From: Mytilus edulis | Lineage: Eukaryota | Assembly: GCF_963676685.1 (NCBI RefSeq) | Contig: NC_092346.1 | Location: forward strand, 45,384,001 to 45,448,000 | Length of the DNA stretch: 64,000 nucleotides | Direction: 5' to 3' | Part shown: piece by piece, positions 12,077 through 61,800 of the stretch | Numbering within the stretch: the stretch's first letter is position 1 | Layout: every line of letters begins with the position of its first letter | Made by a program: the position numbers and the translations under genes | The notes under the pieces: model-generated | Told to the model about the DNA's origin: nothing | Database searches by the model: none | What the model saw: only the letters and a program-made list of their open reading frames with translations

Positions 12077-12187
12077 TAAGATTGATATCGTTTTTATAAG
12101 ATTTTTGATCATCCATTTTCAATATAAGATCAAGTATGTTTCAAGTTGTCATTATCAAGGACCTTGAAAAATAAAAGAACGTGGATT

Positions 12188-12500
12188 AGTTTAGCCCCGC
12201 CACATTATGTATGAATTTGCTTGTCCCAAGTCAGCAGCCAGTAATTCAGTGGTTGTCGTTTGTTTATGTGTTACATATTTGTCTTTCGTTCATTTTTTTT
12301 TATATAATTAGGCCGTTAGTTTTCTCGTTTGAATTGTTTTTTCATTGTCATTTCGGGGCCTTTTTTAGCTGATTATGCGGTATGGGCTTTGCTCATTGTT
12401 TAAGGCCGTACGGTGACCTATAGTTGTTTATTTCTTTCTCGTTTTGGTCTCTTGTGGAGAGTTGTATCATTGGAAATCATACCACATCTTCTTTGTTATA
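12188..12500 (+). mobile_element. Retroelement 3' tail, family D (ends ...ataccacatcttcttt)
   Basis: The same sequence occurs at 31780-31930 and 42143-42333, with fragments at 796-840 and 40930-41010. It begins with the 3' half of the twister-like motif (ccccgccacatt...tgtcccaagtcag). Confidence 0.75.
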
Positions 12501-16698: not shown

Positions 16699-17526
16699 GA
16701 TAAGAAAAATTTCAAAGATAAGAAGTTAGCAATATCCTTTAACTCTACTTTCCGCTATATAGATGACGTTCTTTCACTAAACAATTCAAAATTTGGTGAC
16801 TATGTGGAACGCATCTATCCCATCGAATTGGAGATAAAGGATACTACAGATACAGTTAAGTCGGCTTCATATCTTGACTTACATCTAGAAATTGACAATG
16901 AGGGTCGATTGAAAACTAAACTTTACGACAAAAGAGATGATTTCAGCTTTCCAATTGTGAACTTTCCATTTCTAAGTAGCAACATTACAGCAGCACCTGC
17001 ATACGGGGTATATATCTCCCAATTGATACGATATTCCCGTGCTTGCATTTCCTATCATGATTTTCTTGATAGAGGGTTACTGCTCACAAGGAAGCTATTA
17101 AACCAAGAGTTCCAAATGGTGAAGTTGAAATCATCCCTTCGTAAATTTTACGGACGCCATCACGAGTTGGTTGACCGTTATGGAATAACCGTTTCACAAA
17201 TGATATCGGATATGTTCCTTACGTCGTAACTACAATCCCCTTCCCTTTCATGAATGTGACCTATTGAATTAGACTATTTACCGGATTTATAATCACATAA
17301 GCAACACGACGGGTGCCACATGTGGAGCAGGATCTGCTTACCCTTCCGGAGCACCTGAGATCACCCCTAGTTTTTGGTGGGGTTCGTGTTGTTTATTCTT
17401 TAGTTTTCTATGTTGTGTCATGTGTGCTGTTGTTTTTCTGTTTGTCTTTTTCATTTTTAGCCATGGCGTTGTCAGTTTGTTTTAGATTTATGAGTTTGAC
17501 TGTCCCTTTGGTATCTTTCGTCCCTC
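16699..17526 (+). mobile_element. Young 5'-truncated Naiad family B copy nested in the family A tail
   Basis: Encodes FRYIDDVL...YLDL...LYDKRDDFSFPIVNFPFL...YGVYISQLIRY with a stop at 17229. Flanked by a 7-bp TSD TTTCCAA (16692-16698 and 17527-17533). Confidence 0.9.
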
Positions 17527-17578
17527 TTTCCAAATTGTACACAAGAAACTAAAATTAAAATAATACAAGACTAACAAA

Positions 17579-17669
17579 GGCCAGAGGCTCCTGACTTGGG
17601 ACAGGCGCAAAAAAGCGGCGGGGTTAAACATGTTTGTGAGATCTCAACCCTCCACCTATACCTCTAACC
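17579..17669 (-). ncRNA. Twister-ribozyme-like RNA (P5 permutation, P1 replaced by palindromes)
   Basis: GGUUAGAGG UAUA GGUG GAGGG U UGAGAUCUCA C AAACAUGUU U^AA CCCC GCC GC(U6)GC G CCUG UCCCAAGU CAGG A G CCUCUGGCC. One P2 mismatch in this copy. Confidence 0.65.
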
Positions 17670-17860
17670 AATGTAGTAAAGTAAACGCATAACAATACGC
17701 ACATTAAAATTCAGTTCAAGAGAAATCCGAGTCTGATGTCAGAAGATGTAACCAAAGAAAATAAACAAAATGACAATAATACATAAATAACAACAGACTA
17801 CTAGCAGTTAACTGACATGCCAGCTCCAGACTTCAATTAAACTGACTGAAAGATTATGAT

Positions 17861-17934
17861 TTCATCATATGAACATCAGGCACAATCCTTCCCGTTAGGG
17901 GTTTAGTATCATACCATCATAACATATATGAGAA
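17861..17934 (-). promoter_or_regulatory. Type II SECIS element
   Basis: Helix I UCAUAU/AUAUGA. Core AUGAU (17920-17916) / UGAU (17878-17875). Helix II GGUAUGAUACU/AGGAUUGUGCC has 10 of 11 paired, followed by apical AAA and a CCC/GGG mini-helix. Starts about 50 nt after the TAA. Confidence 0.85.
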
Positions 17935-17982
17935 GAACATAACCCGTGTCATGCCAACAACTGTATTTTAGAATAAATGTGT

Positions 17983-19974
17983 TTAGTTCCGATGCAAAGA
18001 CCTTATCAGTGACTCAATATTAACGCCAACAAATGCAATCTTTAATGACTTGACAACAGTATCGTAATTATATCCCTTCTTAATAAGTCTATTCAAAGGT
18101 TTTGTAAGTTTCTGAGGTGAATACTGACACCTTTGTGCTTTATAAAGAATATTACCATAAAAAATTGGATGTGAAATACCTGAACGTATTAGAAGTCTGC
18201 ATGTTGAGCTATATTTACGAATGATGTCTTTATACCGATGATAAAATTTAGTAAATGTTTTGACTAGTTTGTGATATCGAAAACCCTGGTGTAATAATTT
18301 TTCAGTAATACATAAATTTCTCTCGTTAAAATCGAAAACATTGTTACATACACGAGCGAATCGTACAAGTTGAGATATATAAACACCGTAAGATGGTGAC
18401 AAGGGAACGTCACCATCTAAAAACGGATAATTAACGATAGGAAATGAAAAATCATCCCTTTTATCATAAATTTTAGTATTCAGCTTTCCATTAGTGATAT
18501 AGATATCAAGATCAAGAAAAGGGCAGTGGTCATTGTTAGTATTAGCTTTATTTAAAGTAAGTTCAACAGGATAAATTTCATTAATATACATACTGAAGTC
18601 GTCATTATTGAGAGCCAAAATATCATCCAAATATCTAAAAGTATTATTAAATTTGTTTATCAGATGTTGTTTCGATGGGTCTTTGCTTATTTTTGTCATA
18701 AATTGTAACTCATAACAATACAAAAACAGGTCCGCAATAAGTGGTGCACAGTTAGTCCCCATTGGAATTCCGATAATCTGACGATATACGGAATCTCCAA
18801 AGCGAACAAAAATGTTATCTAGTAAAAATTCAAGGGCATATATAGTATCAAAGCATGTCCAATTAACATAGTTTTTTTGTTTATTGCTACTAAAAAATGA
18901 CCTAAAAGAGTTTGAACATATATATTCACATTCTGATTTTTTGAATGCCCATTTAATTAGGTGTGTGAATTTTTTCTTAATGAGAATGTGAGGCAATGTG
19001 GTATACAGGGTAGAAAAATCAAAACTTTGAACAGATTCAAAATCACCAATATAAGCATGCAATTTATCAAGTACTTCCAACGAGTTCTTGACACTCCAAA
19101 AGTAATTTATTCCACTATTTTCGAAGGCCATATTTGAACAATTTATTATCAGGTTTTTAATTGTACCAAGTGTGCTGGTAAGAAGAATAGACAATTTAGT
19201 AGTTGAACAATGGCTTGAAGACGAAATAAATCTATATTTGTAAGGGGTTTTGTGTAGCTTCGGAAGCCAATACATAGTTGGGACTTTCATTGTATTTGGC
19301 TCTGCTTGTAAAGCGGTGGCTAACAGTTTATGTTTGTTACAGATTTCGTTTTCTGAAAATGGAGTCAGTTGGAATGTTGGTGAATTGGTGATTTCCTTTT
19401 TCAGAACCTCAATGTAAAATTTACGTCAAACAATAATAATATTATTAGCAGCTTTATCTGCCGGGACAAAAACAAATTCCTTGGCTAGTTCTTTTAGTTT
19501 ATGTTTGATACGAGAAATAGGTTTATTGTGGTTATTGTTTATAGTAAAATGTTCTTTAAAATGTTGAATACGTATATCAACTATCTTCATTACTGAATTA
19601 AAAAAAGAGTCCAAAGATTTTTTGTCAGCTTTTTCCCGTTTTATCCATTTCATACAGTAAGTATGGAGTGAGTCGTGGATGATATTACGACACTCATTCC
19701 AATTAATAATTGACGGGGGACGATATTTAGGTCCTTTACTGAGGAATGATTTTAACTCTCGGTCTTGAACGATGTTAAGATCTCCTGTAATAACATGGGA
19801 AATGGGTCCATAAATATATTCGGAATTACTGCAATTACATGAAGTAGGTGTATTTTCACTGATATTAACATCTTTACACAATTGACTATAATTAAACACA
19901 AATTTCCGGGTAGATTTCTTGTAAATATAACAAATAAGAGGTAGCTCAGTATTGACAAAATATCCAGGAATTTG
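17983..19974 (-). CDS. Naiad PLE polyprotein fragment (CxC linker + reverse transcriptase), 663 codons with one in-frame UGA read as Sec
   Basis: ORFs 19426-19899 and 17983-19290 share a frame and are joined by TGA (19428-19426) plus 45 open codons (RKFYIEVLKKEI...EPNT). RT motifs are SFDFSTLYT, GIPMGTNCAP, FRYLDD and FLDL. The native start and N-terminal endonuclease are missing through truncation. Confidence 0.85.
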
Positions 19975-21085
19975 TTATTTAACCCCATTCCAAACTAAAA
20001 GACAAATTGAAAGAGTTGGTATTGCTTTGTTTCATAAAAAAGAATGGTCAACGTAGATACAAGTATCTTGTCTTCGGGAGGGATACATCACACTTTACAC
20101 AGGATCACACTGATTCAAACAAAAAAAATCTCTGAAACTGACAATATCAAGATGCTTGATATATTGATTGACAACATATTTGTTACGTTTGGAGGATGTT
20201 TTTTTCAAAAGACTGCCGGCGTTCCAATGGGAATCAATTGTGAACCTCTTCTTGCCGACTTTCTTTTTTTATTTTTTATAAAACATTAGATTCGATCATA
20301 GTGTTTTGGTCAGCAAACAACTTGTTAGACGTTTGTTGTGTTCAATGAAAACACTCATACACCAAAAATATCTGCTTCAAATCGTTTACAAAAAACAATA
20401 CGTTAATTAATCAAACCAAACAATCAGCTTATTCTTTTATTCTTAGTTTGTTTTAGATTATAATTTTCATCTAAGGTAGATCAACGAACGATCTGACTTT
20501 ACATATATGATAAATCTGTCAATTATTAGGTTAGGACCATAGTTTAACAAGAAACGAATACATCAGGTTTCTTGAATAACTTTAATGTGTTATATTTGTC
20601 ATCTTAAAGAATATGATGAACATGGATCTGACGTTTACATTAAAAGTGTACCCTTTGTCCTATTAAATTTGCTGACCAAGTGAAAACGGTCTTGATTCAT
20701 AGCATTCAAATATTGATCACATTTATTTAAAAGGAATATTTCCTCTTAGAATCTTGATTTCAGATTTTGTCATGTTTTCTCAAATAATCAACTGTAATGA
20801 CCGAAAAAGTTCCACAAATGTTTCTTTGATGTTGCTGTTTTTAAATGTAATTTTTCAGAAATTTAACTGTTTCTACATAAAATTACATTCACAGTCATAT
20901 ACTATTTAGATGTTGGTTCATACTACATTTGATAGATCTATTTATATCATATGTATATTTTCCGTATTAAAGCATAATGCATTAAACAATTTTCAACCAA
21001 ATATATCAAACCAAATAACAAAAATGTCTAAAGATATTTAGATTTACAAATTAAGGATCCACTTCAGCTATATACAATGTAAATA

Positions 21086-33206: not shown

Positions 33207-33420
33207 AAAAGTAAAATCACAAAAATACTGAACTTAGAGGAAGATCAATTGGGAAAGTCCATAATCACATGGCAAAATCAAATAACAAAACGCATCAAAA
33301 ACGAATGGACAAAAACTGTCATATTCCTGACTTGGTACAGGCATTTTCAAATGTAGAAAATGGTGGATTAAACCTGGTTCTATAGCGCTAACCCTCTCAC
33401 TTTAATGACAGTCTCATCAA
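33207..33420 (-). mobile_element. Family C retroelement 3' tail containing a twister-like fold (33315-33412)
   Basis: Related copies at 43636-43880, 48865-48966 and 51400-51540. P5 ACUGUCAU/AUGACAGU, P3 AUUUUC/GAAAAU, P4 CCUG-UACCAAGU-CAGG. Confidence 0.7.
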
Positions 33421-43020: not shown

Positions 43021-44384
43021 AAAAGTTAAAATACAGTATTGAAAAATATGTCTGTTGTAAAGTAGGTCCATGTGGAGTCAAAATAAAAGTATAGTTTATT
43101 TGAAAAGGAACATTTGAAATTGCTTCATACATGTACTAAAATAGTGGTGTTTAGCTCAATTGACTCGAATGACCAGTTTGATCTTTTATGTATATGAATG
43201 GAAAGTTCAACCAAAGTTCAAAGAAAATTTCCCGCTGAGGGGAATAATGATGTTGGACTTTAAACAATGACATTTAAATAACATTTTTTTTGTACTCCAA
43301 TTTCATCTTTGTTTGAAATCTGTGGGCATTATATTGTATATTCAGCAATCCCAATAAGTAGTTTTATATACGTCTGTAAGAAGTTAATCTCTGTAATTAT
43401 CCTTTCCAACTTAGATTTCATAAAATCATTATGGTCGTTTTCAGTATCAATTGTCAATGTTCGAGAACATGACAAAACCGGTAATAATATTCGATGTACG
43501 ATAATGAACATATGAAATGTAATAAAAGATATCATAATAACTTCAGTATGTCTGGTTTAATATTAAAGTTTCATCAAGTACGATCGTGTTCATCTGTTTG
43601 AGAGACAAAGGGCATTTAACGTTTTCGAGTATACAAAAAGTAAAATAGCAAAAATACCGAACTACAAGGAAAATTCAAAACGCAAAGTCCTTTCTCATAT
43701 TGCAAAATGACAAAAACCCACACAAAAGGAAAACAACTGTCATATTCCTATTTTAATACACTGTCAGGCATTTCTTTATGTAGAAAAGGGAAGATTGAAC
43801 CGGGTTTAATAGCTAGCTAAACCTCTCACTTGTATGACAGTCGCATAGAAATCAATTAAGTTGACAACGATGTGTGAGCAAAGCAATGAAACATGTGAAC
43901 AGTATGTCAATAAATATATAATATTCTTCATAAAAATAACGTAAGGTCAAGGAAGAGTAAACTTTGTCAGATTTTTTTGGTGAAATAACGAACTCCTAGT
44001 AAAATTGAGCAACTTTTATAAAAACTGAATAGATAAAACGTGACCAACCAACGTCACCAGTGAAAACAACTGTCCCATTCCTGACTTCGTACACACATTT
44101 TCCGAAGAAAACGGTCGGTTAAACATGGTTTTATAGCTAGCTCATGTGTATGACAACTGTAAATAGTTTTGTTTATATGACAATATAAGGTGAGCGACAT
44201 ACAAATTAGGTTATAATGTGACAAAAAATTTGGACTAAAAACGGTGTACACATACAGACAGACATCACAACTTACTACAAAATCAAACAAGCATACAAAT
44301 TAATATGAGAAAGACTAGAAAATTGAAAATGACAACGATTAAAAAAAAATGACAAATCAATTATAACTATAAAATAAAAAGATT

Positions 44385-48780: not shown

Positions 48781-48991
48781 ATTTGCTTGTTTCTTCATAA
48801 AAAAAAAAATCTGTATTTCATATTTGCTGATGACATATGCATGCATACACTGAAATATTAGGTAAAAAGTGAAATCACAAAAATACTAAACTCAAATTTG
48901 CAAAATCAAAAGATCAAACACATCAATCGAACGGATAATAACTGTCATATTCATGACTTTGTACAGTCATCAGGTAAAGGGCAGCATCGAT

Positions 48992-49364
48992 ACTGAATTT
49001 TAATGTGCGTATTGTTATGCGTTTACTTTTCTACATTGGCTAGAGGTATAGGGGGAGGGTTGAGATCTCACAAACATGTTTAACCCCGCCGCATTGTTGC
49101 GCCTGTCCCAAGTCAGGAGCCTCTGGCCTTTGTAAGTCTTGTATTATTTTAATTTTAGTTTCTTGTGTACAATTTGGAAATTAGTATGGCGTTCATTATC
49201 ACTGAATTAGTATATATTTGTTTAGGGGCCAGCTGAATGACGCCTCCGGGTGCGGGAATTTCTCGCTACATTGAAGACCTGTTGTTGACCTTCTGCTGTT
49301 GTTTTTTTCTATGGTCGGGTTGTTGTTTCTTTGGCACATTCCCCATTTCCATTCTCTATTTTAT
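48992..49364 (+). mobile_element. Uninterrupted 3' tail of Naiad family A
   Basis: Matches the reverse complement of 17527-17716 joined to 16506-16698. Truncated below the SECIS. Confidence 0.92.
49038..49128 (+). ncRNA. Twister-ribozyme-like RNA, best-preserved copy
   Basis: P5 GGCUAGAGG/CCUCUGGCC, P2 GGGG/CCCC, GAGGG, U49081^A49082, GCC, P3 GCA/UGC, P4 CCUG/CAGG with 8-nt loop UCCCAAGU. Confidence 0.72.
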
Positions 49365-52300
49365 TCAAAGGAAGATAACTTTTCTGCTACTAATTAGAAA
49401 TTAAAAAATGACTGTTATTGGTGTCTGGATGAGGAGGTATTCATATCTCTATTTTTAATTATTTATTCCATTTTTTTATATTTTTTTTTGGTCCTTTCTT
49501 CCTTTCTTCCTTTCTTTCTTATTTTAAGTCTTTTTGATAATCATGCAATCTGTAAACCTTTCTGGATCCTCTAAATTCAGAACGTTTGTCATTTATTTTT
49601 GTTTTAAGTCGTTTATTTTTGTCAATTTCTAGTTAAACAGAAATAAGAAGCAATCTTCTTTGGTTTTTTTTAATTTTTTATAAAAGTGAAACTTTAGATC
49701 AATGACTACTAATAACAGATACATGTACACACTGACGTATTGATAAAAATGAAACCATCAATATCTTAAAGGGATATAACATTCTCTGTTTTTAGTCAAA
49801 TTGAAAATTGAATGAAAACAGTTCAGGATTAGGAGGTCTCGTTTCTTTATTCTCTAATTCTTAATGTCCTTTTTCTCTATCCTGTACATTTTACCCATTT
49901 TGCCCATTATCTTTATCCTTTTTATATTTTATCTTGTGATTTTCTGCACTGAAACCCCGTTCCGATCCTCTGGAATCAGAACGTTTGTCATAGATCCTAG
50001 TTTTGAGTGGTCTATTTTGTAGAAAAGAATTACAAAGATAAGAATTATGATGAAAATTACCTTTATTTCAAGAAATCTGATATAAGATACATGCACACAT
50101 TAAACTATTGAGAAAAAGAACATCATCAATATTTAATGCGAGATAAAAATTATATTTGTCAGGATGTTAACTTTTCTTGCCATAGCGATCTTGAGCTGAG
50201 TATACACCGGGAAATATGATGCAAGATTTGTAATGATATAAAACAAAATTTTAGAAAATATTGTAATTATAGCAAAGAATTATATAAATCATGAACATCT
50301 TATCTAGTCTTGAGATAAAATATATTTTCAAATTCAGACTAAAAAGTCAACTAGTCTCATTTGAAGCCATCAATTAACGATTTTTCAACATGTATTTACA
50401 AATATGAATATGAAATAAATTGCTTCGCCGAGCGCAGCTGGATACGACCGCCGCAGAGGTCTAACCCTGAACAGTTTGGGCAATTTTTTTTTAATTTATA
50501 CAATTGCCTATATCAGTGGTATCATTTGTAACATACTTGAATGAAAAAGTTCTGTTCTTTTTGAGGATAATTATTGTTATATCTTATCATACACATGTTT
50601 TTGTGACATTTGTCTTATGGTTACTGCCAAGAGGTGTTCTGGAACGAGCTCGTGTAACCATATTTGATTCACTAATGCAATACAAAATTTCTTAGATGTA
50701 TTTTCTATTATTCATTTTTGGATATTATCAAGATTATTTTGAACTCTTTTATATTAAAATACCATAATAATCATAATCGTTATAGTATTGAGCTATTCTT
50801 CAGACAGGTTATTACAAATCCTTATTAGTTTTGATTATATCTCATATAAATAACATGGATAGGTGAATGTACGTCTCTTTTAGATCACTTGATAATTCCG
50901 ATTAATTTACTCTTTTATCATCGAAATATGGAATTGATCTATTTTATTTTGCCTCATTTAGTTGAACTTCAAGTAAACTTTCAAATTAAATTCGAGTTCA
51001 ATCAACAGAAGTGTTTGAACTCGTTTTTCATGTTTAAATGAATAAAAGCCCTTCGTTAAGTTGAATGACATGAACTTCAATTTAAAGCTATAATTATTCT
51101 CCGTATTATAAATCAAAAAAATAATGCAAGTTGTCAATAGAACACAGCAGCCCACACTAGTCGCCAACATCCTCCACTCCTCCGATAAAAACACACATTT
51201 TACAGGTAGGCGTAAACTGTGGTTGGGAAGTTTTATGTGAACACAAAAACTTGGTCTTTATCATTTGAAAATAACATATTCCAACTAATTCCTTCAAAGA
51301 TACTCTTTTATAAATGAAGTTTTGATGTTCTGGGTGGTAGGATTGACAAGTACCACTTTCACCTTCCGTAAAATATTTATGAAATTTGACGAAAGTTCGG
51401 TATATTCCTGTACCAAGACAGGAATATGGCAGTCGTTCCATTGGATAATTTAGTTGAGCGTTTGGTTTAGTAAGTTTTCATGGACTCCCTACTTTTTTAG
51501 TTTACTTTCGAGGTCGGTATTTTTGCTCATACCTTTTTTTCTATACATCATATATTTACTACACACAAAAACCAAGTGTACGCTTGACCATTGTCCAACA
51601 ATATGTGTAGTCCGTAAAGACTAATGATTATTAAGGACACAGATATTCCATAAAGGTCAACTAAATCACAATGTCCTCCATTAACTGTCGTAAAGATGAT
51701 ATCAACTTAATTATTAAGTGATTTACTATCTGCTATAGAAGGTATTATCAACACATAATGTGTCTGCTTCATTATAGTTTTTTTTTTTATTTGTAATGAC
51801 AAAAAATACTACTGCTTATAATATTTATGTGGTCGAAATGTAAAATAGCTGCAGATGTGATTTAATGCATTTTGAGCTCATTCAATCACCGTTTTTACGT
51901 ATTTTTACGTACCTATTCTCTTTAATCGAGAACATGCTATATATATATATATAATTATATCGAAAACTGGAGTATAATGCTGCACATATATATCGCAATT
52001 TAGTTTATTTCTCTCATAGATAATCTGTTAACATTTCAGCCAAAGAATCATTGCCTAACTTCAAATAACAAGGGTTTTTTTGGAAGAAAAATAATTGCAG
52101 CGAATAATTTTGTGATGGATTTCCTTTTAAGTTCATGCATTTTCTGTTGCCATGTATGCTTTCAACAAGTTTTAAAATATTGTGCTATAAACGGGTTCTT
52201 TATTTTGGGGTTATATTTTGAGTGTATTGATTAAAGTTTCAAAGCAACTGCTTTCATCATCGGTTGTATTGCGGTATGTGTTGACTTTTTTCCAGTTTTT

Positions 52301-58889: not shown

Positions 58890-61800
58890 ATGGCTGGTAT
58901 GAAAGACAATATTGACTCTGCGTCAAGTACTACATCTGAGATGATCAACACTGCGGATACAGATAAAAGATTTTGCACACTTACCGAGAGTGGTAAAGAA
59001 CTTTTTGAAAACAAACAAAGAAAATTTTTGTTAAAAATGGAAAATGTAAAAAGTGACCTACAGCTTTTAGCAAGAAACATTGATCCATATTCTAATTAAT
59101 TAACACCATTACAGGTGCTCAAAACGAAATTTATGAGTGGAACTGTCCGTTATGACACAATTTGTAAAGAATACCTAGATTTTCTTTCGAGGACTAACAC
59201 TGCTGAAGGCGTGGATGAAGTTCATAAACTATCAGGGGAAATGCAAGATTTAACACACTTTGTGGAAACAGAAGGTAGACGAATGAACACAATCATTAAT
59301 GAGTAACGTGCTATATAGAGAGAAAATTCCTTAGCTAGCAGAAGTTCTAGGAGAAGCCACTCATCCAGAAAAGCACATAGTTCCTCCTCTTCATCAGTCC
59401 TTGCAAAAGTAAGGGCCAAAGCTGAAGCTGCAAAGGTAAAAGTTCAATTTGCAGAGAAAGAAACTTTGTTATTGAAGGACAAGGCGTTTCTAGAAGAGAA
59501 AAAGTCGATAGAATCAGCAAAAGTAGAACGCAAGAAGGCCGACATTGAAGTCGATTTAGACCTGCTTTCTAGACAGAAGGAAGCAGCAGCAGTTGAAGTA
59601 GAGACTGAAGCCTTGCAAAATGAATGTGATGAAAATATGTCACAAGTGTTGCCTGATCAACCACCACTTGATTCGAAATCAAAAACTGCAGCATATATTA
59701 ATCATGTTCAGCAACAAATTGGTTCAATTCATATCGACAAAGAAAACACACATTCAATTCAAATCGACAAAAAAACACACATTCAACTCATGTCGATCAA
59801 GTGGACTGGTCCTAGTGGTCTAAAACACAAGTTCAAAGTATCAAAGCTGTGAATACTAACAATCCGTCAAGAGCTCTAGAGCTAATCTGGGAGAGACAGA
59901 ATGAAAGGTATTGTAGCCCAGAGCTTATCGACAGTGCACTCAAGACAAAGCTAGCAGCTTTTCCTCGCATTACAAACAAGGATTATTTTAAGTTGTATGA
60001 TCTATCAGACATCTTATCAGAGATATCATCTGTCAAAGAAAATGACAATTACAGGGTTTAATTTTTCTATTTTGACTCGTCAATTGGTGTAACGCCAATC
60101 GTAGCTAAGCTTCCATATCAGCTTCAGGAACGATAGACTACTATGGCCGTTAATTATAACGACAAAAACAAAACAATATATCCGCCATTTCATTTATTTG
60201 CTCAGTTTATTCAGAAACAAAGTAAGGTAAAGAACAATCCGAGTTTTTTATATGACAGTCAACAGGCAAACACTGGTTTTAAGGATAAATTACCAACAAC
60301 AAAAGGGAAACTTAATGACGTTCAATAAAGGCAACAGTAGTATACCGCTGTTCAAAACTCATAAATCCATTGACAAAAAACAAAATCGGGGTAACAAACT
60401 AAAACCGAGGGAAACGCATTAAATATAAGAGGAGAACAACGACATAACACCGAAACGTAACACACACAGAAACGGACCAAGCATCAGACAAAACACCACG
60501 AGAATAACAAATATAACATGAAAACCAAATACATGAATTTGGGATAGACAAGTACCGTGCCACGTCTTATCTCAATTTCATAAAATAAGAGAAAACACAA
60601 ACGACTCAACGTTAAAATGCAACACACACAGAAACGAACAATAATATAACAATGGCCATCTTCCTGACTTGGTACAGGACACTTTTAAAGGGGAATAAAA
60701 GTGGTGGGTTGAACCTGGTTTTGTGGCATGCCAAACCTCGCACTTTAATGGCAAAGTTAAATATAACATTGAAATGACAACATAATATTACAGGACTACA
60801 ATACAAATTAATAGAACATATTAGACAAAGAAAAACATGATTAATAGATAACAAAAAGCATCAGGTTTAAAATTCAATACGCCAAAAACGCGCCTTGTCC
60901 ACACAAGACTTACAAGTGACGCCCAGATATAAAAGATCGAAAGTGAAAATAGTACAAAGTTGTACAACACTGAAGATCAAAAGTTGAAAAGGTTTCGCCA
61001 AATACGGCATTGTTTTTATGCCCGGGATAAGAACATTCTTATTATATAGAACAATTCATGCTATTGCAAACAGTAAATTTTATCAAATGAATATGAAAGG
61101 GATATACATAAAGAAACTGAAGTATTAACTAATTACAGAAAACTAAACCCGAATACATAACGCCCAGATATAAAAGATCGAAAGTGAAAAAGGTACAAAG
61201 TTGTACAGCACTGAAGATAAAAAGTTGAAAAGGTTTTGCCAAATACGGCATTGTTTTTATGCCCGGGATAAGAACATCCTTATTATATAGAACAATTCAT
61301 GCTATTGCAAACAGTAAATTTTAACAAATGAATATGAAAGAGATATACATAAGGAAACTGAAGTATTAACTAATTACAGAAAACTAAACCCGAATACATA
61401 ATGCTATTAAAGTTTAACACAGAATAGACACACCCGAATCAGTCCAGGCGTCAACGTAATTAAAAAAAATGTGACGTCAGACTTTGCTGAAACAAAACAT
61501 GAGAGAAGCCAAAGTGTGGATCCTAGTGAGAAATGTTTGATTCATGTAACATCTAAATTAAAGTCAATACAAGAACGTAGGCAATTTTTAAAGTTGAACA
61601 AATTATGTTTCGGATGTTGCTTGTCGGTATCATATTTTAAACGCAACTGTCCTAACGCAATAAAATGTGGGGATTGCGGGAAAACAGATCACCCTACAGC
61701 ATTGCACATAAAAAAATCGAGAGCAACGATCTACAGAGCCATCAGATTAAGATTGGAGCGTTTTGAAGAGGAAAACAAAGTTCAAACTCCTATACAATCA

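Follow-up and report, generated by a model that had tools for sequence, protein, structure and literature searches.

The window, by which we mean the whole 64,000-nucleotide stretch of Mytilus edulis DNA that was analysed, carries at 48992-49365 on the plus strand a 5'-truncated 3' fragment of a family-A Naiad. The fragment is ~370 nt long, contains no ORF, and was delimited by BLAST to the copy at 17.5 kb and to a tandem unit. Within it lies a 91-base motif (49038-49128, plus strand), in which direct reading of the sequence identified every core segment of a twister ribozyme, arranged in the type-P5 order. The general base was numbered as the first nucleotide of the 3' L1 strand, following PMC11662667, which places it at G49055 and the predicted cut between U49081 and A49082. 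The segments were assigned as follows.

49038-49046 (+): 5' strand of P5, GGCTAGAGG, also given as GGCUAGAGG; the fold opens here, as in type P5, and the strand pairs with 49120-49128
49047-49050 (+): junction UAUA, occupying the place of GUAAA in type-P1 twisters
49051-49054 (+): 3' strand of P2, GGGG; its partner is 49084-87
49055-49059 (+): 3' strand of L1, GAGGG, taken from the Rfam alignment; G49055 is the general-base position and 49057-59 take part in T1
49061-49070 (+): UU, then palindrome 1, UGAGAUCUCA, where the 3' strand of P1 would be
49072-49081 (+): C, then palindrome 2, AAACAUGUUU, where the 5' strand of P1 would be; its last base is U-1 (49081)
49081-49083 (+): U-1, A1 and A2, with the predicted scissile bond at 49081/49082; the UAA of Rfam Twister-P5 aligns here
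49084-49087 (+): 5' strand of P2, CCCC, followed by the T2 dinucleotide GC at 49088-49089
49090-49101 (+): P3 hairpin, C-GCA-UUGU-UGC-G (C-GCAUUGUUGC-G)
49102-49117 (+): P4, CCUG/CAGG, with loop UCCCAAGU; 49107-09 pair with 49057-59 (T1) and 49112-13 with 49088-89 (T2)
49118-49128 (+): A (49118), then the 3' strand of P5, GCCUCUGGCC (49119-28); P5 appears in the MFE fold

The core pattern matched four times in the window and not once in 100 shuffles. Among the parsed family representatives, the counterparts of the UAUA junction are UAAA, ACAA, CAA or UAA. Further copies in the window, which represent three families and different stages of decay, are listed below.

17579-17669 (-): second family-A copy; predicted cut 17626/17625
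33314-33413 (-): family-B copy with loop UACCAAGU, L1 GAGGG and palindromes UAGCGCUA and AACCAGGUU; predicted cut 33370/33369
60653-60755 (-): family-C copy with C at -1, palindromes UGGCAUGCCA and AACCAGGUU, and a weakened P2; predicted cut 60711/60710
43746-43832 (-): decayed family-B copy with an insertion in the P4 loop (R1 model, 39.8 bits)
44079-44149 (-): decayed family-B-like copy without the GAGG segment (R1 model, 23.5 bits)

Weak R1-model matches at 51331-51423(+) and 12174-12236(+) (16.5 and 12.7 bits), which keep CCUG-UACCAAG-CAGG and little else, are likely to be very decayed copies. An inverted family-B tail fragment, consisting of a decayed P4 loop and the 3' side of P5, occupies 48900-48970, ~20 nt upstream of the family-A fragment and head to head with it.

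The second family-A copy, at 17579-17669(-), lies ~310-400 nt downstream of a 435-aa ORF (17983-19290) with PLE-type RT motifs. According to PMC8557442, Naiads are marked by DKA, in place of DKG, and by a CxC motif. The former, as FVPADKAANNIIIV, ends the ORF just upstream of the window RT ORF and reads PADKASNN in locus L063; the latter reads SCNCS in family A, in the ORF just upstream of the RT ORF, and SCDCIS in L063. Cysteine-rich, endonuclease-like ORFs precede the RT of L063, no ORF follows it, and Pfam returned no GIY-YIG match there. Neither RT nor GIY-YIG was matched by Pfam in the window ORFs or the upstream ORFs, and the Naiad motifs were read by eye, Pfam giving no match. The DKA and CxC motifs, together with a C-terminal RT following an endonuclease-like region, thus speak for a Naiad as the host. 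At 19291-19428(-) in the window, a stop separates the ORF ending in ...ADKAANNIIIV from the RT ORF, which starts with MKVPTMYWLPKLHK.

The motif follows Naiad-type RT genes at a distance of ~300-600 bases and on their strand, both in this genome and in marine metagenome contigs that derive from other hosts. The element continues for ~250 nt beyond it, and that region makes the pseudo-LTR. Locus L041 begins with an element tail, followed by the full element, and L050 carries the motif both upstream and downstream of the ORFs (L050:1-82 and L050:4181-4263), the two copies being identically oriented and separated by ~4.18 kb. At G000:C1:6233300-6243118 (L123 covers 6233300-6238600), units of 4,749-4,750 nt follow one another head to tail, and every unit contains a family-A twister motif. 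The internal part of these units is unlike the autonomous element in L041, and their ORFs are broken. A much shorter unit of 207 nt is repeated 2.8 times at 99% identity at G000:C1:5262219-5262797 (L126:919-1497, minus strand); each unit comprises a complete family-B twister motif and a tail of ~105 nt, without an ORF. By analogy, this array resembles a twister-bearing counterpart of the hammerhead retrozymes. In the family-A copy at 17.5 kb, ~830 nt of other sequence is inserted ~50 nt after the motif (window 17527), and the tail resumes at 16698-16507.

The 17-base core of P4 and its loop occurs 36,526 times in the 1.37-Gb genome, compared with 0 for the reversed control. Near-complete motifs number 11,649 for family A (12 in the control) and 6,897 for family B (18 in the control). 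The genomic copies are for the most part dead fragments, and thousands of near-identical copies belong to a single family.

Comparison with Rfam models located both the resemblance to twister and its limit. When 106 bases were scanned, Twister-P5 matched 49051-49117 over model positions 1-58 with 23.2 bits (E 0.0025), below the gathering cut-off of 37.6 bits. P2, GAGGG, UAA, GC and the P4 loop are all part of the alignment, and the P1 hairpin alone has no counterpart, its 20 model positions facing 21 unaligned bases. This match surfaced only with the 106-base input, for which the search filters were laxer; the entire window and a 301-base stretch around the motif gave no match when scanned. 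A search of the whole genome with RF02684 returned no match at E<=10, with only 79 of ~31,000 candidates scored. Family B gave a weak, partly misplaced match to twister-P1 (18.4 bits, E 0.074), family F, from a metagenome contig, a local twister-P1 match over P3-P4 (19.6 bits, E 0.031), and family C no Rfam twister match. The stretch after GAGGG does not pair with the stretch before U-1, and the P1 helix criterion is therefore unmet. By Rfam's own threshold the motif is not a member of the family, and the shortfall is located in P1. That helix is reported to be dispensable in twisters (PMC11662667; PMC8501958); the 2024 survey in PMC11662667, in which only type-P1 twisters were tested, found imperfections in P1 and P2 to be tolerated.

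We parsed 21 family representatives and counted pairs position by position. The closing pair of P2 occurs as C-G, U-A, A-U, G-C and G-U and is paired in 20 of the 21, and the first T2 pair occurs as G-C, G-U, A-U, C-G and U-G and is paired in all 21; in neither case did any of 2000 shuffles score as high. The P4 hairpin of this copy has the twister loop pattern U-N-C-C-A-A-G-Y; both partners of P4 pairs 1 and 3 vary between families, and the P3 pairs also covary. The third T1 pair is C-G, A-U, G-U or U-A in 14 representatives and U-U in six. A compensated first T1 pair was detected in L045, L046 and L055, where GAAGG accompanies loop UCCUAAGU and GAAGA accompanies loop UUCUAAGU. A1, A2 and the general-base G are invariant in all 21 representatives, with U or C at N-1, and the leading G-A of the 3' L1 strand is kept throughout, including in the GAAGG and GAAGA variants. 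An abundant family-C subfamily has a mismatched P2 closing pair.

A covariance model was then built from families B-J only, without any family-A sequence. It recovered family-A copies at E ~1e-7 and aligned 43 motifs from 85 sources; in the metagenome loci oriented by their RT, all of its motifs lay on the RT strand. Pair statistics were taken from the model-based alignment of 36 distinct sequences, with T1 and T2 added by hand. The nested helices belonged to the model, so that their statistics lean towards it, and the pseudoknots T1 and T2 did not. In this set, 94.5% of cells were paired, compared with 73.3% after shuffling and 33-43% with slid partners, and the covariation score was 0.451, compared with 0.139 in shuffles (0/500 as high) and 0.04-0.06 with slid partners. 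P2, P3, P4, T1 and T2 all covary in these 36 sequences. The P2 closing pair appears as GC, UA, AU, CG and UG, with three of the 36 unpaired. P2 consists of 3 bp and one bulged nucleotide in most families, and of CCCC/GGGG at this copy. All seven P3 pairs of the model vary on both sides across families. Within T1, columns 12-195 hold GC 31 times, AU twice and GU once, columns 13-194 are invariant, and columns 14-193 hold GC 11, UA 5, AU 3, UG 2 and other combinations 13 times. Within T2, columns 85-199 hold CG 13, AU 10, GU 7, GC 1 and other combinations 3 times, and columns 87-198 are an invariant C-G. For P5, cognate flanks form an average of 7.3 contiguous bp, compared with 3.7 when flanks from other families are substituted. 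These observations show that the fold, comprising P2, P3, P4, P5, T1 and T2, and the catalytic nucleotides are conserved, with covariation, in many families of Naiads, from this genome as well as from other hosts.

The wider distribution was obtained by aligning RT homologues, which yielded 80 marine metagenome contigs with RTs 40-99% identical to that of the window; the motif was sought in them with a simple descriptor, a palindrome scan and the covariance model. Nearly all contigs with enough 3' flank and an RT at least 53% identical carry the motif downstream of the RT and on its strand, and it is also found in family-C-like elements with RTs 43-45% identical. In this genome, a single occurrence of the P4/loop core of families D-K was counted, from which it follows that the D-K contigs derive from other organisms. 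Long 3' flanks in which neither the motif nor an Rfam family at gathering score was found are present in about seven contigs whose RTs are 40-47% identical, and in L058 (53%). These motif-less contigs (L085, L086, L101, L103, L104, L108 and L058; RTs 40-53% identical) could belong to another type of element, carry a very different motif or be chimeric.

In place of P1, two palindromes that are self-complementary through their centres occupy fixed places in 19 of the 21 representatives. In every family, palindrome 1 begins 2-3 nt after L1 and palindrome 2 stops 0-1 nt short of A1. Seven versions of the four bases at the centre of palindrome 1 exist among the 21 representatives, all of them self-complementary, and 12 or more different palindromes are found at this place in other families. 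The versions of palindrome 1 are GAGAUCUC, GGGAUCCC, GGCGCC, UAGCGCUA, UAGCUAGCUA, UGGCAUGCCA, GGUGCACC and GGGCGCCC, and further GGGGCCCC, UGUGCGCACA, ACGCGCGU, UGAGCGCUCA, UGGGCCCA, UGGAUCCA and UGAGUACUCA. Those of palindrome 2 are AAACAUGUUU, AAACUAGUUU, AACC(A/U)GGUU, AA(A)CCGG(U)UU, AAUCUGAUU, AAACGUUU and AAGUCAGACUU. Two close relatives, L045:4164-4235 and L046:2121-2192, differ by two central changes in palindrome 1 and both remain palindromic (UGGGCCCA and UGGAUCCA). In this genome, the compensated palindrome versions form many-copy families, and the broken versions are singletons. Cofolding of the palindrome segments gave ddG values of -12 to -18 kcal/mol in most representatives, with two weaker values of -10.0 and -6.8, compared with ~-7 for shuffles.

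Three other arrangements of this region were considered and rejected. A reading of the palindromes as hairpins was set aside, given that the central four bases are themselves self-complementary in seven versions; a hairpin loop would not need such centres, and pairing between two strands is therefore the natural reading. A hidden P1 between the two palindrome regions was excluded, no complementarity having been found. A closed two-strand duplex with both palindromes paired would be topologically crossed, with linkers of only 1-3 nt. How the copies would be arranged in space, whether as a symmetric dimer or in a chain, remains inferred, without experimental data.

Several claims of the preliminary description, which had been made from the sequence alone, can be judged at this point. 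Its statement that all twister core positions are present held, each piece being confirmed by direct reading, as did its comparison with the rice twister core: segment by segment, the motif agrees with the published S. mansoni twisters in the table of PMC8501958. It had also reported that two perfect 10-nt palindromes replace P1, which held (49061-70 and 49072-81), and had named different palindromes at this place in other families (UAGCGCUA, UGGCAUGCCA and UAGCUAGCUA), all of which were found. The dispensability of P1, which it took as known, agrees with PMC11662667 and PMC8501958. It had proposed a check with the Rfam twister models, in which Twister-P5 aligned below threshold with P1 unmatched, and had named the absence of T1, T2 and P2 covariation, together with the absence of site-specific cleavage, as grounds for refutation; all three covary. 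Its assignment to twister is supported by the full-length Twister-P5 alignment, the covariation and the invariant catalytic nucleotides, with cleavage itself still inferred.

We looked for traces of cleavage in public raw RNA-seq of the same species label, aligning four runs to 17450-20000. The element in this interval is covered on both strands, with depth climbing towards its 3' end, and the consensus G at 17654 is present in >90% of the RNA reads. Near the predicted cut at 17626/17625, neither read starts nor read ends piled up to the threshold of a fifth of the depth in the four runs. Across the cut, depth drops by 37-49% in the first-mate-on-plus class and by 20-29% in the other class. 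This strand-biased step is possibly a sign of partial cleavage, with which it is compatible, as it is with other causes, and we claim no support from the reads. In reads carrying the consensus core, depth is high on both sides of the site, and reads therefore probably run across the predicted cut. Any signal from cleavage ends is blurred by the use of ordinary libraries, by dead copies and by passive transcription of both strands. Most RNA reads pass straight into the element tail despite the ~830-nt interruption in the 17.5-kb copy. The self-cleavage at 49081/49082 predicted in the preliminary description thus remains an inference, with no end pile-up in RNA-seq and no biochemical data.

The MFE fold of the monomer (-37.1 kcal/mol, z -2.64) contains P5, P3 and P4. 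It exchanges P2 and T1 for a pairing of GGGUUGAG with UUUAACCC, which would bury A1 and A2; this alternative helix was not conserved in detail in the other families.

We assign the motif to the twister class because Twister-P5 aligns over its full length except for P1, the helices and pseudoknots covary, and A1, A2 and the general-base G are invariant. The most likely explanation, to which we give a probability of roughly 0.7, is that it is a self-cleaving ribozyme of this class, in the type-P5 permutation, located in the 3' region of Naiads that forms the pseudo-LTR; self-cleavage is the inferred part of this statement. The RNA would cut itself between U49081 and A49082, leaving a 2',3'-cyclic phosphate and a 5'-OH. 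Cleavage would trim tandem or read-through transcripts to unit length, and the unit-length RNA might be circularised and then copied by the RT of the element. Twister would in this way do the job proposed for hammerheads in other PLEs, a substitution already suggested in the preliminary description and retained here as inference only. Against this reading stand the lack of a cleavage assay, the RNA-seq reads without a pile-up of ends at the predicted cut, the sub-threshold Rfam scores, the absence of a match for family C and the mismatched P2 closing pair of its abundant subfamily, the U-U third T1 pair of several families, the competing MFE fold and the short linkers, which do not let both palindromes pair in a simple duplex.

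The role of the palindromes is a separate and weaker inference. Each missing P1 strand may have been replaced by a self-complementary stretch, so that two copies, either two RNAs or two ribozymes of one tandem transcript, would have to pair for full activity. We rate the chances of this proposal a little below one half. For the earlier suggestion that the ribozyme is "possibly dimer-activated", the conserved palindromes with their seven centres supply comparative support, and dependence of activity on a dimer is still an inference. A bolder version, which we consider less likely than not, would have Naiads use a pairing-gated twister throughout the clade, the active site being stabilised only when two copies dock symmetrically, whether as two RNAs or as two pseudo-LTR copies of one transcript. 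It would constitute a second, independent invention of the dimer-dependent design of PLE hammerheads, and short tandem units consisting only of twister, such as the 207-nt array, would be twister retrozymes giving circular RNAs.

The best surviving alternative, which we consider unlikely, is a twister active as a monomer, with P1 dispensable and the palindromes serving a separate purpose, such as joining two RNAs of the element to allow packaging or template switching, or keeping the ends of the unit-length RNA together so that they can be ligated. Several points favour it: imperfection or loss of P1 is tolerated in twisters (PMC11662667; PMC8501958), both palindromes would form the extreme 3' end of the upstream product after cleavage, and partial tandems are typical of PLEs. 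Against it, the palindromes sit exactly at the positions of the two P1 strands in every family, which is unexpected if they are unrelated to the active site.

Still less probable is a twister-derived or twister-like structured RNA that no longer cleaves and that, at the template's 3' end, serves the Naiad RT as a module for recognition or dimerisation. This reading could account for the lack of a read-end pile-up at the site, for Rfam scores that are below threshold or, in family C, missing, for the absence of P1 and for an MFE fold in competition with the active one; PLE hammerheads likewise cleave poorly in vitro (PMC4209133). However, A1, A2 and the general-base G are invariant while the surrounding pairs change freely, and a mere scaffold would have no need of them; compensatory changes have also preserved T1 and T2, from which the active site is built. 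The last alternative, that the resemblance is due to chance or that the motif is a relic under neutral decay multiplied by a single successful element, would suit the predominance of dead fragments and the thousands of near-identical copies of one family, but is all but excluded by the many distinct families, the presence in at least two hosts, the compensatory changes in five helices and the near-zero control counts, the covariation already refuting it.

Naiads outnumber all other Penelope-like elements in many invertebrates, and PMC8557442 describes them as lacking canonical hammerheads, as the preliminary description had stated, without mention of twister; the reported lack of the hammerhead, which every other endonuclease-bearing PLE has, was taken there to mean that the ribozyme is optional. 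Bivalves are among the new twister hosts in PMC11662667, where no element is named. In the literature searched on twister and Penelope-like elements together, PLEs were tied to hammerheads only, and no link between twister and Naiads was found in the open-access literature searched. A prior description in papers outside that search is not excluded. The earlier suggestion of a candidate for an undescribed system can be kept in this form: no prior description was found in the literature searched, and the twister class itself is known. What is new is a variant of that class that lacks P1, bears palindromes and resides in a new host element.

If Naiads do carry a twister at the place of the hammerhead, self-cleaving RNA would be a general requirement of PLEs, met by two unrelated ribozyme classes, and both classes would show a palindromic replacement of the closing helix. 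Two independent systems would make the long-debated function of PLE ribozymes directly testable with regard to tandem processing, circular templates and dimer dependence. Tens of thousands of natural type-P5 twisters without P1 would be added to those known, having been missed at current Rfam thresholds, and their new T1, T2 and P2 variants offer material for work on the twister fold.

Compared with the type-P5 twister (RF02684; the class of Roth et al. 2014), the Naiad motif has the same order, P2'-GAGGG-[P1]-UAA-P2-GC-[P3]-G-P4 with loop UCCCAAGY, the same T1 and T2 pseudoknots, and the catalytic A and G. It differs in having two tandem palindromes instead of the P1 hairpin, in the P2 of 3 bp with one bulged nucleotide in most families, and in its T2/T1 letters (AC/GU, CC/GG) and loops (UACC, UUCC or UGCC). 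Twister and T-variant ribozymes are also known from the 5' end of Perere-3/RTE non-LTR retrotransposons in Schistosoma mansoni (PMC8501958; PMC7761336). The S. mansoni twisters (PMC8501958) share with the present motif a retrotransposon-borne core with P3, a weak or missing P1 and UU after GAGGG, and their P3-P4 module is close enough for matches to the twister-P1 model. Unlike the Naiad motif, they are of type P1, lie at the 5' end of a different class of retroelement and have no palindromes.

Metazoan non-LTR retrozymes (PMC7229834; bioRxiv 10.64898/2026.07.22.740005) are similar to the 207-nt units in forming short tandem repeats with a ribozyme in each, but theirs is a hammerhead. A parallel is offered by the minimal hammerheads of canonical PLEs (PMC4209133; Lunse et al. 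2017, cited in PMC6765202), in which a short helix III has a palindromic loop cap; they show activity in dimeric form and only poor cleavage in vitro (PMC4209133; PMC6765202). They occur in the same kind of host element and at the same place, the 3' region that forms the pseudo-LTR, ahead of the end of the element. In both systems the closing helix is reduced to a palindrome and dimeric action, favoured by tandem copies, is proposed, although for the Naiad twister this is inferred. The ribozyme classes differ, as does the arrangement: in the hammerheads a single palindromic hairpin gives rise to a shared helix III, whereas here two palindromes take the places of the two P1 strands.
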